Shown here: piece by piece, positions 31,454 through 45,999 of the stretch
Numbering within the stretch: the stretch's first letter is position 1
Layout: each line of letters opens with the position of its first letter
Assembly (NCBI RefSeq): GCF_000315625.1
Contig: NW_005434633.1
Location: 392,310-455,201 of the forward strand
From: Guillardia theta CCMP2712
Taxonomy: Eukaryota; Protista; Cryptophyta
Length of the DNA: 62,892 nt
Direction: 5' to 3'
Position numbers and translations under genes: made by a program
Notes under the pieces: model-generated
The model's input: the letters and a program-made list of their open reading frames with translations, nothing else
The model's database searches: none
Told to the model about the DNA's origin: nothing

Positions 31454-31779
31454 GACTCTATGGATATATCATTAGTCGCGCCTCCCCCTAGCCTCTCATC
31501 ACTTGTCATTCGCTCCTCTGCTCCCTCGTTTGTTCTCCCTCCTCCCTCCTCCCTCCTGTCTTCCTTCTTCTCTCCTCTCTCTCTCTCCCTCCCTCCCTCC
31601 CTCCCTCCCTCTCTCCTCTCTCCTCTGAACCTTCCTGTAACCATATCCCTACCAAACTTTGGAGGGATCTGATGCGTTAACGCTCCTCTCCTCTGGTCCA
31701 GCAATTGCAGCAAAAGCTCGATGCGGATAGTTTCTTGGCGGATGCAAGTTATCGATTAGAAGGCCTTTGTGTACTTGCA

Positions 31780-31828
31780 TTGTCCAGATCTGATATCATA
31801 CAATCTGTGTGATATCAGATCTGGACAA
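31780..31828. other. Perfect 19-bp-stem hairpin
   Basis: TTGTCCAGATCTGATATCA-tacaatctgtg-TGATATCAGATCTGGACAA. Confidence 0.95.
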
Positions 31829-32131
31829 GTTGGTGCTGTTCTGGCCATCCAATGCTGCTACCTCTATCTGGGCCGGATAGGCCTGCGCATCTTACTCGGT
31901 AGTTAGACATGTAATCTGGTTTCCTTCCCAACAAGAGTTACTCTCCTCGTCACGGTGCTGCATTCCTTGTTGGACCTTTGGCCGCTACCGCTGGCTGCCC
32001 GGTCTGCAGCTTGTTGTGGAAGTAGAACTTCATTCTTTATCCCTTAACTTTGTCATACATGTATTGATGTATTGACGTCATTGAAGATCCGCCTTGACAG
32101 CTGTCGCTTATACAACCATGTAGCATGGCCA

Positions 32132-41210: not shown

Positions 41211-43020
41211 AGTATAAGTAAATGTTGTGATGCGACAGGTCACGAATGCAACGAGTTTAAGGTTTTGTGTGCAAGCAGAGCTTCCTTCAATGCAGACTGG
41301 ATGGAGCGTTTTTGGGTCAAAGCTACTAGTCGTAGGAGGGTAGTTGTAGCCGAAGCAAGAGTATGGACGAGATAGGGGTGCTGCAGCTTCTCATACGGCA
41401 AAGCCACAACAGTGATGGTTGCGTATTGCCTGTTGTCGAGTGCTGCCGATACAGTCATAAGAGCTTGGATGTCTCCATCTTTTGCGACTGAAACAGCGTT
41501 CTGCATGAGTAATGGAAGAAGGCAAAGACGGAAAGAGGACGAGGAGAAGCTTGAAGATTGCTTCAGACACAGACTTGCACGAGGCTATGAACTCAGATGA
41601 TCTGCATAATCTGTAGAGCGGCACGACAGTGAGGCCAGACATCAATGGATGCATGACACTGACCCGCCGCCATCAGACCTTGAGGCCCGCATGCTGCGCC
41701 TCAGAGTCCAGCAACGTATAGGAGAACAGGTGGAGGAGCTGCTTCTCGCCCATATACACGCAGCACTCACTCGCTGCAGGCAAGCTGCCTCCATCCGCTC
41801 TCCGAGCTGGCTATGTCGTCTCATTTCCCGCTGCCCTTTCTCGCACCCGCAGAGCACTCCGCTTGATGCCCATCAGGGTTCGGGTAAGCTCCATGTCAAT
41901 AAAACCACACAGCCTTCTTGCCCTTGGCCTGTCGAGCTGATTTGAAGTTGTTCTGAATGCGGATTCTGCCCATGTTCATTCGTTGAATGTTTCTTGTGTC
42001 TTGGATATCAAGACTGACAGGTGTCAAGACTGCCAGGTGTCAAGACTGACAAGTTGCACTCATGGAAACGACTGGGAATTCTACCTCTTGTTTTCGGTTG
42101 TGTTCTTTGCTTCTCAGGTTGGAAGATCAGGACAATGTATTCGAAATAACAAGTGAAGCTAGTTTTGGTTTAATGAGCAACGAAGCACAGTGGTGATCCA
42201 CGCATGCCGGAACTCCGTGATGCGAGCAGCTGTCCGAGGATGGCATGATGCGTGCAGCTGTCTTGTGTGACGTGTTGCGGCAGCGTGGCGGATGTTGCTT
42301 GGGCGAGTGTGAGGGGCCGAGCTTGTCTTCTTTCTAGGGCCTAACAAGGTTTCATCGCAGCTTCGTGGTCTGCACCCGTTCTTTTATCGCTGACCGGGGC
42401 TCTACGGTACGGGTGGGTGGTGCATGTCCGCCAACTGAGTTCCGATGAAGCACTAGTCTCTTACTTGGGGTAGAAATCATAGAGGCTCAAATAGAGTCTC
42501 AGAGCCCTATAGTCGAGGCGTGTGAGGGAACCGCTGAGCCTACCAGGCTGGTTCAACCACGAGTTGGCTGCTTCTGCGTGCAGCGGCGGCGCCAGAGGAG
42601 ATGCAGGGGCAGGGGAAGAAGAGCTCGCTCGGTCAGCACATGCGATGCCGGCAGCATCTGACGGATCCTGATGGCTCCATGGGCCGACACTTGGATCAGA
42701 GCATCAGCATTAGCCGCTAGTCGGCGGGCCCTGAGAGGGGGGGAAGAGAGGTAGAGCGGAACAGCGTCAGAAGGGTATCGAGAGACGAATAGTAGTGGTG
42801 GTGGTGGTGGTGGTGATGCTGTTGATGTTGTTGTTGTTGTTGTTGTTGTTGTTGTTGTTGATGATGATGATGATGATGATGATGATGATGATGATGATGA
42901 TGATGATGATGATGATGATGATGATGATGATGATGCTGACACTGATATCCTGTAGCAAATCTGAGCCATGGAAGAACGTTTTACCAGAAGTGAGTCGCTG
43001 TGTGCCATCTCCGTTAGCTC

Positions 43021-45033
43021 TTGATTACTTCCTTGCTAGCTCTGGCCAAAACCGCAAGAGACATCAACCTGGATGATGTATTGAAGTCCTTGAAGCAATG
43101 CCTTGATCGCCGTCTTGACAATGAATGGGACTCGACGTCGTCACGGGTGCAACCGAGCAAGCAACTGAGTGCTATGAATCCAATCGATCAAAGGATAAAG
43201 AAATCACATTACCATGACTCTGATTACTTGAGCCTGATTGCAGCTTGTGCTGGGAGCGGGAAGTCGCTTTGTGCTGCTGATTACTTTGTTCGGAATGCAA
43301 ACCACAGCATGTACTTCCGCTTTTCTCCTGTGTACGAGCATTCTGCGCACGACATTTACTTTCACCTATTACCGGTCACGAGACTTCTGAACAAGGCCTT
43401 GGACTGCGATCTTTGCAGGGTGATTTCGCTTGCTGCTAAATGAGATGAGGCACGTCGATTGGGAGTTTGGGATGTCAATATCGATGGACAGGAAGGTTGG
43501 TATGTGCTCGGGGCCCTCAAATTCCTGTGGAACAAGACGACTTCCGTTGCTCCAGTCACTGTGGATGAAGCTAGGACTTGGGGAAGGCAGTGGGTACTGT
43601 TGGATGATGTGTTTCCTCCTGAGCAAGACAACACCTACCTCATCTCACCCATGGCAAAGCTGGTTTTCTTGATTAGGATACTGAGGAATGCGAACATACA
43701 ATGCATCATGCTGGGGACAAACACCGCGATCTTGAATCTCGTACAACCTCCACCACAGCCCTTTGTACACAGTCGGCAAATGGGGTATGAGTTGCTTTGC
43801 TGCTCACATCGCTGTCTTCCTGGATACATCCTGCCGTCAGACGATGCCGAAGAAGCCCTGAAAAGGGTATTCGGCGAGGCGCAGGTACCCAAGCTGCTGG
43901 ACCATGTCCATCCGTGGCTGTGCTCGCATTTCTTGGACTGTTTGAGGGCTTCAAAGGAAGTCGAGCCTGCCAAGCTGATTCGAAGCATCTCGGAGCATAT
44001 ACAATCAGATTTCAATAGAATAATGCTGAGGTTGACCAACGAGTCTATCTACTGCATGTTTCAGCCGACTGTCAACGAAGCTTTCCCTCAATCTATGATC
44101 TCCAAGGGGCTTGCCCTGTTGGATATCAATCGTTCAGCAGAAATGCCACCCCGAGGCATTTACGAGACATCCGTTGAAGTCTCAAACGGAATAGGTGACA
44201 AAGATCTTGCTGAGCTGACCTCGAGCTTTGCCTCTGCTCTGCTGGACCCCATCTCGTATGCTGCTTGTGCGGGAGGGGGACGGCCTTTCTCAGGAAGAAA
44301 ATCGGAATCAGCACTTGAGGTCTTGAAGCAGATCCACAGCAAGACGAAGATGGGGGATAATCCTCTGAGCGTGGATGCGTGGAAGCGAGCTGGGAGCATG
44401 CTGGAGTCGTTCGGTTCAGTGGTCTTGATGATCAGCAGCTGGTCTCCTTCTCAGAAGCTTCTGACAAATCTCGCTCACCACTGCGGCATGACAGACTCAA
44501 GGAGCGCGGATCAGATCCTTGCTTCTGTTGCCAACAAAGAAAGCTTCGTGGAGATGCTCGCCTCGTGCATGTGCAACCTGGTCCCTGTCAAAGAGAGCGA
44601 GCAAGAGCACGCCCTTGCCACGGCCCTGGGCTTCTACGCTCCCGCCAAGGATACGCAAGGTAGAGACTATACTTTCGGGGGGCCAGCTTCTTCAAGCAAG
44701 ACAGGATGGAAAGGAGGAGCGAAGTTCAAGAGCTCGTTGTCTCCTCTGACCTCGAAGCAGATGTCAGAGGTGGTCTCGGAGCTGCTGGAACAAGATCTGG
44801 ATGTCAATGTGTGCATGGTGCACTCGATATCAACATACAACCCCAAAGCCTGCATCAGAGAGAGGAATCATGACACAGAGTGGCTGGTGTTGCAACTGAT
44901 ATGGGGTCGATGGGAGGCTTCAACAGAAGCCCCACGAGTGAGTAAGCAGAAACGGGAGGCAGGCAGCAGAGGAGAGGCTGAGACGGTCAAGCCTAGGAAA
45001 ATTCTGATGATCATGGAGATTGGAAGGTTCTAA
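43021..45033 (+). pseudogene. Second Crinkler-type NTPase copy with an in-frame TGA
   Basis: TCA in the left copy is TGA at 43441-43443; reading frame otherwise conserved. Confidence 0.8.
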
Positions 45034-45999
45034 TGGCCATGCTACATGGTTGTATAAGCGACAGCTGTCAAGGCGGATCTTTAATGACGTCAATACATCA
45101 ATACATGTATGAGAAATTCAAGGAACAAGAATGAAGTTCTACTGCCATAACAAGATGCAGACCGGGCATTCGTAGATTAGTCAGAGGCCAGCGGTAGCGG
45201 CCAAAGGTCCAACAAGGAATGCAGCACCGTGACGAGGAGAGTAACTCTTGTTGGGAAGGAAACCAGATTACATGTCTAACTACCGAGTAAGATGCGCAGG
45301 CCTATCCGGCCCAGATAGAGGTAGCAGCATTGGATGGCCAGAACAGCACCAACTTGTCCGGATCTGATATGATACAATCTGTGTGATATCAGATCTGATA
45401 TCAGAGAATGTGTGTGTGTGTGTGTGAGAGAGAGAGAGAGAGAGAGAGAGAGAGTGAGAGGAGAGAGTGAGAGTGAGAGAGAGTGAAAGAGAGTGAGAAA
45501 GAGAGACAGAAGAGAGAGAGTGGGTGAGAGAGCGGGAGAGAAGAGAAGAGAGAAGGAGGAAGACAGGAGGGAGGAGGGGGAGGGAGCAAAGGAATGAATG
45601 AGAAGTTAGGGGCTAGAGGGAGGCGCGAAGTGCAAGAAGCAGGAAGGAGATGATGGAGAAAAATGTGAATACGAAGAAGATGAAGAATGAAAGGTCTCAA
45701 GCGCAAGCGCAAGGCAATGAGTGGAGAGATAGGCACAGACAGGTTGCCGAGATCAGAATGAGGTGGAGGTTGAGATGGTGGAAATATTTTGACTTGAATG
45801 GTCTAGAGTAGAGAGGAGATCAGAAAAATCACAAATCAAAGATAACATGTGAGGCGAAACAAGAGGAGAGGAGAGCGAGAAGGAGTAGGCAAGAAGAGGA
45901 GGGGAGAGACTTGTATGGTTTGACAAGAGGTCACGAAGTTGCAGGAGGGAACCCGGCAGAGGACGGAAGGTCTCAAGATGACTCGCGCTCATGCAGAGC

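Follow-up and report, generated by a model that had tools for sequence, protein, structure and literature searches.

Fold-back and template-switch errors during replication form inverted segmental duplications and palindromes in eukaryotic genomes, and palindromes are also a known failure mode of assemblers. Gene families of the immune type are often multi-copy. For Crinkler toxins, the described module order is an NTPase, an HTH and an REase (PMC5289972). DUF1281_C proteins with a length of 168-188 AA have been reported for the cryptophyte Rhodomonas lacustris, namely from 21 of its Polinton-like viruses, and the inverted termini of such elements can extend to kilobases (PMC12220804). The window analyzed here, a stretch of 62,892 nucleotides from scaffold JH993005.1 of the cryptophyte Guillardia theta CCMP2712, is nuclear DNA and contains a quasi-palindrome flanked by homocitrate-synthase-like, EF-hand and poly(A)-polymerase-like host genes. 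Scans of the window for tRNAs and Rfam families found nothing, and no paper was found for the scaffold accession. According to the original prediction, each arm of this structure is a dispersed composite unit, either a new mobile element or a defense cassette. The analysis points to a different origin: the structure is probably a one-off rearrangement, and it is likely that one inverted segmental duplication of fairly recent date, i.e. a palindrome with a spacer, copied two unrelated genes that were neighbors by chance and now seem to be decaying.

The whole quasi-palindrome, comprising the arms, their outer extensions and the spacer, spans positions 31,492-45,628, and its arm pair is a real inverted repeat far beyond chance. 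The high-identity core of the left arm is located at 31,785-37,001 and that of the right arm at 40,376-45,397, with a spacer of 3374 bp between them (37,002-40,375). The copied segment is about 5.2-5.5 kb long. The repeat search reported collinear inverted blocks of 2333, 802, 494, 492, 293, 211 and 172 nt with identities of 96-100 %, and blastn aligned 31,785-35,325 to 45,397-41,942 with 92.7 % and 35,456-37,001 to 41,946-40,376 with 94.9 % identity, gap columns being counted in both values. Both methods agree with the predicted two inverted arms around a spacer of 3.37 kb, and the outer bounds match as well. Beyond diverged microsatellites, a weaker homology resumes and reaches about 31,492 and 45,628. 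The left outer extension (31,492-31,640) lies past a (CTCC)n/(CT)n microsatellite at 31,535-31,626, and the right one continues past a (GA)n microsatellite at 45,426-45,553. All four genes or frames of the arms point outward. In the spacer, whose edges show patchy extra homology, the sole recognizable gene trace is a lone WD40-like exon fragment near 38,068-38,140 on the forward strand.

Since palindromes are difficult for assemblers and this older draft genome has short N gaps in other parts of the window, an assembly artifact was considered, either as a chimeric fold-back or as a misjoin of two alleles or paralogs. This explanation is very improbable. In the blastn alignments, about 3.4 % substitutions and many indels separate the arms. 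A fold-back of the same reads would not look like this, and the arms are therefore two distinct copies. N runs are absent from the palindrome and its vicinity, the spacer is a unique sequence with its own repeats, and the arm and the left arm-spacer junction are reproduced by independent metagenome contigs. The same gene order across the arm is found in three contigs of related uncultured organisms with 91-94 % identity (L095, L097 and L098). Therefore, the juxtaposition of the two genes predates this strain and has persisted. L097 and L098 are about 4 % apart and could be paralogous copies. As both enter the left spacer edge, the left arm was considered as the original one, which was rejected because patchy copies of these sequences are also present at the right spacer edge.

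The short repeats and hairpins that had been noticed in the arms were all recovered. A (TCA)n/(CAC)n trinucleotide array is located just upstream of the left NTPase frame at 34,226-34,491, with its mirror at 42,820-42,939, and short-read contigs of a related organism end at this array. A 16-bp tandem repeat occupies 35,219-35,259 (mirror 42,008-42,051). A hairpin with a stem of 23 nt and a loop of 3 nt at 31,780-31,828 sits exactly at the onset of high arm identity, and its mirror at about 45,357-45,403 marks the right outer edge; neither recurs elsewhere in the window, and 97 other loci lack the hairpin as well. In its left part, the spacer contains a tandem array of six units of 23 bp (37,528-37,671), of which about 1.5 inverted units recur at 40,246-40,280. 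Directly next to the right arm, on its inner side, lies a segment of 41 nt (40,335-40,375). It is a direct rather than inverted copy of 37,429-37,469 with 95 % identity and may be a junction footprint.

In the favored series of events, the YubB-like gene, of a type found in phages, giant viruses and Polinton-like viruses, would have been acquired earlier by horizontal transfer and would have landed beside an unrelated member of the NTPase family, the two becoming neighbors by chance. A segment of about 5.2-5.5 kb would then have been duplicated in inverted orientation, most likely by a replication or repair error, for example by fold-back or template switching at short repeats. This would account for the spacer being unique, for the arm edges carrying the hairpin and microsatellites, and for the 41-nt direct copy next to one inner junction. 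Hints at the mechanism are the hairpin at the arm edge, the 41-nt direct repeat at the right arm and the inverted partial 23-bp units. Both genes would subsequently have drifted without constraint, leaving a decaying duplication instead of a working cassette.

The same anatomy can also be read as a mobile or viral element, or a relic of one, whose terminal inverted repeats are very long. A foldback-type transposon or a degraded Polinton-like virus would be examples, with the NTPase-nuclease and YubB genes carried as cargo in each repeat. Formally, long inverted termini enclose a unique core, with arms of about 5 kb each making up most of the 14 kb, and there is a hairpin at each outer edge. 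Against this, no target-site duplication was seen: the flanks outside about 31,492 and 45,628 share no direct repeat longer than 2 nt, the ends being blurred by microsatellites. Further evidence on this reading comes from the two proteins.

The left-arm NTPase frame (32,132-34,144, reverse strand) has 670 uninterrupted codons, and the right-arm copy (43,021-45,033, forward strand) is broken by one in-frame stop without a frameshift. The two copies share 94 % amino acid identity. The prediction of a 670-AA NTPase exon and a gene of about 165 AA in each arm, both pointing outward, is thus correct in orientation and gene content, except that the right NTPase is interrupted. As a member of a multi-copy G. 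theta family, the large protein consists of a P-loop NTPase, a helical region and a C-terminal region with a nuclease-like motif. The Walker A and Walker B columns are conserved in all 13 family members, a sensor-like Gly-Thr-Asn motif is conserved as well, and 10 of the 13 members have an invariant Asp followed by Glu-x-Lys about 19 residues on. The paralogs are dispersed, ordinary host genes with host neighbors and 35-48 % identity, and two of them, GUITHDRAFT_104016 and 104018, are neighbors of each other whose NTPase bodies are about 99 % identical, so local duplication is recurrent in this family. Long forms reach 847-1009 AA, and P0228 and P0229 are extended by repetitive sequence of coiled-coil-like character.

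For the NTPase and 17 relatives, no meaningful match came from Pfam, NCBIfam, PHROGs or PADLOC, and searches of PDB sequences, whether started from the protein or from its profile, returned chance matches only. Word-seeded searches with the protein found only 15 proteins, all unnamed or from G. theta, and a 13-member profile found the same set without adding any. The structural model has a pLDDT of 60 overall and below 50 in the nuclease-like region, for which no nuclease structure or family was matched. With this mediocre model, the best Foldseek matches were Apaf-1, CED-4, MalT, ORC/Cdc6 and Tn7 TnsC, with E-values of 2e-4 to 1e-3 and TM-scores of about 0.2. Of the proposed Crinkler-type NTPase/nuclease, the P-loop NTPase with a nuclease-like motif is retained; membership in the Crinkler family found no support, as the family scans and word-seeded searches gave neither a sequence match nor a header.

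The YubB/DUF1281_C-like genes are intact in both arms. The left one (36,188-36,685, reverse strand) encodes 165 AA and has no intron, and the right one (40,707-41,210, forward strand) encodes 167 AA and is 96 % identical to it. The AlphaFold model has a pLDDT of 95.3. Its top fold match in the PDB is Api92 (2ijr; E-value 6e-4, probability 1.0), and the top viral fold matches, from phages and giant viruses, are named 'YubB ferredoxin-like domain-containing protein' (TM-score 0.84, E-value 2e-17). Api92 was found by the fold search alone and was missed by a PDB profile search with the family. At an E-value of at most 1e-3, 1225 representatives were obtained. These are distant, the closest having 41 % identity and the best aligning residues 1-161. 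All 7 invariant and 16 nearly invariant columns of the family are kept in the window protein, which matches PHROG 20518 with an E-value of 2e-9. The window proteins score 13.2 and 13.9 bits and thus remain below the Pfam PF18406 gathering score of 22.8 bits. Among their full-length relatives, 27 of 41 match PF18406 (E-value at most 0.01, best 2e-8) and all 41 match PHROG 20518. Since these matches come via relatives, the link of the window proteins to PF18406 is transitive. The family has only one conserved cysteine column and therefore represents a ferredoxin fold without the iron-sulfur cysteine cluster. The identification of the small gene as YubB/DUF1281 of the phage or large-virus type is borne out by the agreement of the PHROG, fold and relative matches. 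The GC3 content was uninformative as a test of foreign origin, the host genes in the window spanning 0.43-0.81.

In favor of a viral or mobile element are the DUF1281_C proteins of the Rhodomonas lacustris Polinton-like viruses and the inverted termini of up to kilobases of such elements (PMC12220804). The transposition ATPase TnsC among the NTPase fold matches and the near-identical copies in related organisms would also fit. Overall, such an element is unlikely. Capsid, packaging ATPase, polymerase, primase-helicase, integrase and transposase families were not detected in the arms or the spacer, and a Pfam search of ORFs of at least 120-150 AA in both arms, the spacer and the left flank returned only the WD40 fragment and the sub-threshold DUF1281_C. 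The NTPase family was not found in the 2.9 million viral contigs of IMG/VR, and its paralogs are host genes. The nearest YubB-like relatives occur in phage-like and not in Polinton-like contexts, and the top IMG/VR contigs with a YubB-like gene, checked for Polinton-like hallmarks, showed phage- or bacteria-type genes only. At the protein level, no second insertion is known, the evidence being confined to this locus and short environmental contigs.

Linkage does not support the claim of a dispersed composite unit either. The YubB-like gene is absent within 10 kb on either side of four G. theta NTPase paralogs and from four metagenome NTPase contigs, and the NTPase is absent from 86 of 86 loci with YubB-like relatives, so the pair is seen in none of the 8 other NTPase loci and none of the 86 YubB-like loci. 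Among annotated G. theta proteins, the YubB-like gene is represented by these two copies only, and its 90 % cluster consists of the two window copies and two environmental ones. Within the annotated proteins and the loci examined, there are thus only two copies of the YubB-like gene, and the two genes are unlinked elsewhere, which is the outcome that the original prediction named as refuting it.

A working conflict or defense cassette, with the NTPase-nuclease as sensor and effector, the YubB-like protein as partner and the duplication raising dosage, would be consistent with the resemblance of the NTPase fold to the STAND/AAA+ switches Apaf-1, CED-4 and MalT, with the nuclease-like motif, with the multi-copy G. 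theta family and its transcribed paralogs, and with a gene order kept in a relative at about 7 % divergence. It is quite unlikely, as the two genes occur together nowhere else among the loci examined and the substitution pattern is neutral. The left and right NTPase copies have a dN/dS of 1.0, with 13 synonymous and 44 non-synonymous changes, and comparisons of the window copies with the third copy in L095, whose ORF ends early, gave 0.86-1.06. For the YubB-like gene, dN/dS is 0.7-1.8, a weak estimate since its two copies differ at only 8 positions. The left NTPase departs at 15 of 117 positions that are invariant in the other 12 members, compared to 0-6 for every other member, and its conserved N-terminal part, in which the paralog ORFs start, lacks an ATG. 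Along with the stop in the right copy, the window NTPase has lost conserved residues in its two NTPase boxes as well as in the nuclease-like motif, and there was no meaningful PADLOC match. MMETSP transcripts are on record for paralogs and not for the window genes, which in a single collection does not imply silence. Both genes therefore seem to be decaying, drifting as if unconstrained. Counter to this, both YubB-like ORFs are intact, keep the family-invariant residues and have a fold of very high confidence.

In a broader scenario, regarded as unlikely, the transposon-derived NTPase-REase modules from which Crinkler toxins arose would also have given rise to the NTPase/nuclease-like family, as a branch in a free-living eukaryote. 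Such a family would be prone to local and sometimes palindromic duplication, as at this locus, at GUITHDRAFT_104016/104018 and in L014 with its inverted fragments. The palindrome would be a fossil virus-host conflict locus, its YubB gene having been left behind by an integrated Polinton-like or giant virus.

The locus is a clean, dated case of an inverted segmental duplication in the nuclear genome of a cryptophyte. With it, a virus-type YubB/DUF1281_C gene is documented as fixed in G. theta nuclear DNA, and an uncharacterized multi-copy NTPase family with a nuclease-like motif is defined, which merits structural classification. 'Ferredoxin-like' in DUF1281_C refers to a fold and not to an iron-sulfur electron carrier, which bears on the reading of cryptophyte Polinton-like virus genes (PMC12220804). 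Current understanding is not overturned by these results, and the claim of a new composite mobile or defense element does not hold.

Compared to known systems, the small protein shares its fold and conserved residues with YubB/DUF1281_C, i.e. the Api92-like ferredoxin-like domain (PF18406, PHROG 20518), and differs in being below the Pfam cut-off, in its location in a eukaryotic nuclear genome and in an identity of at most 41 % to its relatives. With Crinklers, the NTPase family shares the order of P-loop NTPase, helical region and Asp...Glu-x-Lys nuclease-like region as well as its occurrence as a multi-copy family in a eukaryote. However, this likeness is one of architecture only with a poorly modeled nuclease fold, since word-seeded and profile searches gave no sequence-level link. 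Moreover, no ubiquitin-like header, Crinkler or secretion domain was found with Pfam in 18 members, including the forms of 847-1009 AA, and the host is a free-living alga. STAND/AAA+ switch ATPases are the best structural matches and have the conserved Walker A, Walker B and sensor-like Gly-Thr-Asn motifs in common with the family, but the TM-score of about 0.2 comes from a model with a pLDDT of 60, no sequence family connects them, and WD40, LRR or TPR sensor repeats are missing. The likeness to fold-back palindromes, drawn from anatomy only and with the ancestral single-copy state not observed, extends to the inverted copies, the unique spacer, the repeats and hairpin at the edges and the short direct copy at one junction.

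The inverted repeat is real. Its arms match in seven collinear blocks of 172-2333 nt each with 96-100% identity, which blastn joins into two pairs (31785-35325 with 45397-41942, and 35456-37001 with 41946-40376) around a spacer of 3374 bp (37002-40375). No run of N was found near the palindrome. Between the arms, the divergence amounts to ~3.4% substitutions and ~170 gap columns. Beyond fast-evolving microsatellites the arm homology returns, reaching ~31492 and ~45628, and both the inverted arms and the bounds of the original prediction were thus confirmed. The spacer also contains a WD40-repeat-like exon fragment (38068-38140, + strand; Pfam WD40 E-value of 1e-4, below the cut-off), which stands alone with no repeats beside it and may be a gene fragment trapped there.

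All four arm genes are oriented outward. The left arm carries the NTPase gene as an uninterrupted open frame of 670 codons (32132-34144, - strand) and a small ORF of 165 AA (36188-36685, - strand). In the right arm, a small ORF of 167 AA (40707-41210, + strand) is followed by the second NTPase frame (43021-45033, + strand), which has 94% amino acid identity to the left copy, one in-frame stop and no frameshift. The right-arm small protein is encoded on the 611,318-bp scaffold JH993005.1 of the Guillardia theta CCMP2712 assembly GCA_000315625.1, where window position 40707 corresponds to position 433016. Of each NTPase frame, the official annotation covers only a 159-AA tail. A 670-AA NTPase exon had been predicted for each arm, which holds for the left frame, while the right one is interrupted by its stop.

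The window contains nuclear genes of the ordinary kind, namely homocitrate-synthase-like, EF-hand, ChaN-like and poly(A)-polymerase/TUTase-like genes, the last of which lies shortly beyond the right end of the structure. Two 100-N assembly gaps (9499-9598 and 14324-14423) are both distant from the palindrome, and one of them falls within the homocitrate-synthase-like ORF region. Directly to the left of the left arm, a second inverted-repeat pair (24044-24508 and 31122-31454, 96-98% identity, ~6.6 kb apart) encloses a stretch of lower GC with a 462-AA ORF (25721-27109) for which no family match was found; this pair may mark a further rearrangement or the termini of an element. An inverted coding duplicate with 94% identity (28548-28741 and 30065-30258) lies inside the ORFs 28436-29089 (+ strand) and 29783-30313 (- strand). 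A homolog of this segment with 57-68% amino acid identity is encoded on a metagenome contig (L013:4099-4338), ~1.8 kb from an NTPase paralog and convergent with it, and the unnamed gene may be the more conserved neighbor of the NTPase family.

The arm had originally been interpreted as a dispersed composite unit, either mobile or defensive. This interpretation was not upheld, since the two genes are unlinked at the other loci tested and typical element features were not found. The small gene was found neither in the ±10 kb around four G. theta NTPase paralogs nor on four metagenome contigs with the NTPase. Conversely, none of the 86 loci carrying relatives of the small gene has the NTPase, which is also missing from IMG/VR. 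No target-site duplication is visible at the palindrome ends, and no transposase, integrase or capsid families were found. In the 90% clustering, the small proteins of both arms share a cluster with two environmental copies and nothing else. Three environmental contigs of project PRJEB17505 (L095, L097 and L098) have 91-94% DNA identity to the arm and are collinear with both the arm and the left arm-spacer junction. Therefore, the same neighborhood is present in a close relative, which looks like orthology rather than transposition.

A replication or repair error, either by fold-back or by template switching, would create such an inverted duplication. A hairpin with a 23-nt stem is located at each outer edge, exactly where the high identity starts, and was found nowhere else. 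The outer arm edges carry microsatellites, a 41-nt direct copy of 37429-37469 abuts the inner end of the right arm, and inverted partial units of the 23-bp array of the spacer are present at 40246-40280. Because of these edge hairpins, the microsatellites, the 41-nt copy with the inverted partial units, and the unique spacer, a replication or repair error is preferred, and we infer that it fits these four features better than transposition does.

The dN/dS ratio between the left and right NTPase copies is 1.0 (13 synonymous and 44 non-synonymous changes), and ranges from 0.86 to 1.06 against L095. No internal break occurs in the left-arm NTPase, and the right-arm NTPase has a single stop; alignments across this stop served only to obtain scores, counts and outer bounds. 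Since the L095 ORF ends earlier than the left-arm frame does, it contains at least one break. No ATG is present in the left-arm copy within the conserved N-terminal stretch at which the paralogs start, and the N-terminal extensions of the long paralogs have no counterpart in the window. Furthermore, the window copy deviates at 15 of the 117 positions that are invariant in the other 12 members, including positions in both NTPase boxes and in the nuclease-like motif, compared to 0-6 for every other member. The NTPase copies of both arms are therefore best read as putative pseudogenes. In both arms the small ORF is intact and retains every invariant residue; with a dN/dS of 0.7-1.8, based on few changes, the small gene appears weakly constrained at best.

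The predicted YubB/DUF1281 identity of the small gene was borne out by profile, relative and fold matches. The small protein has a sub-threshold DUF1281_C match in Pfam and matches PHROG 20518 (2e-9). A word-seeded search retrieved nothing beyond the window's own protein; an exhaustive search (E ≤ 1e-3) yielded 1225 representatives, the best of which has 41% identity and aligns from end to end. PHROG 20518 is matched by all 41 aligned relatives, and PF18406 by 27 of them. The AlphaFold model (pLDDT 95.3) has its best PDB match in Api92 of Yersinia pseudotuberculosis (2ijr, DUF1281). Among viral proteins, the model best matches 'YubB ferredoxin-like domain-containing proteins' from uncultured tailed phages (E-value of 2e-17, TM 0.84), along with those of the giant viruses Moumouvirus, ChoanoV1, Bodo saltans virus and Aureococcus anophagefferens virus. 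In IMG/VR, relatives are encoded at 408 or more loci, and the contexts examined were T4-like and other phage contigs and one giant-virus-like contig. In addition, DUF1281_C proteins of 168-188 AA were reported in 2025 from 21 Polinton-like viruses of the cryptophyte Rhodomonas lacustris (PMC12220804). A viral source of the small gene is plausible.

In the family alignment (A2), Trp, Gly, Lys, Pro and Glu are conserved, and Cys in one column only. DUF1281_C/YubB therefore has a ferredoxin fold but no motif for an iron-sulphur cluster, and the reading of the Polinton-like virus genes as electron-carrier ferredoxins (PMC12220804) looks doubtful from these residues. A tandem two-domain YubB-like protein of 361 AA (P0019; L006, L007 and L008, from GCA_013566075.1 and two Logan runs) is encoded on a compact, intron-free contig beside genes for a uracil-DNA glycosylase, a methyltransferase, a protein kinase and a collar-domain protein. 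This contig resembles a giant virus that lies within a eukaryotic assembly or next to it.

The large protein matched no family model, no sequence of a solved structure and no named relative. Whether started from the single sequence or from a 13-member profile, word-seeded searches returned the same 15 proteins, comprising G. theta paralogs with 35-48% identity and environmental or transcriptome sequences. Within the scope of word-seeded searches, the family appears cryptophyte-restricted. It includes nine or more G. theta genes, and some paralogs have MMETSP transcripts. Two neighboring genes on a 1.05-Mb scaffold, GUITHDRAFT_104018 and 104016 (P0228 and P0229), are ~99% identical over the NTPase body, with a repetitive coiled-coil-like extension at the N-terminus as the only difference between them. 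This pair adds a further, very recent case of local duplication, a process that recurs in the family. On a 2.4-kb metagenome contig (L014), an N-terminal NTPase piece (1047-1637, + strand) faces a C-terminal piece (1865-2335, - strand), and the two are either parts of an inverted arrangement or incomplete genes that point at each other.

Walker A, Walker B and a Gly-Thr-Asn motif are conserved in the family; further along come an invariant Asp and, ~19 residues on, in 10 of 13 members, Glu-x-Lys. With a pLDDT of 60, the AlphaFold model is of mediocre quality, and its weak PDB matches are the STAND/AAA+ ATPases Apaf-1, CED-4, ORC, TnsC and MalT. In contrast to the Crinkler-type protein originally predicted, no header domain and no sequence link to Crinklers were found, so that the large protein is at most a candidate member of this group. 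Nevertheless, the large protein shares with many Crinkler C-termini the order of NTPase, helical region and nuclease-like region (PMC5289972). An NTPase-plus-nuclease architecture is plausible, and a reasonable reading is that the intact paralogs work like an NTPase-regulated nuclease.
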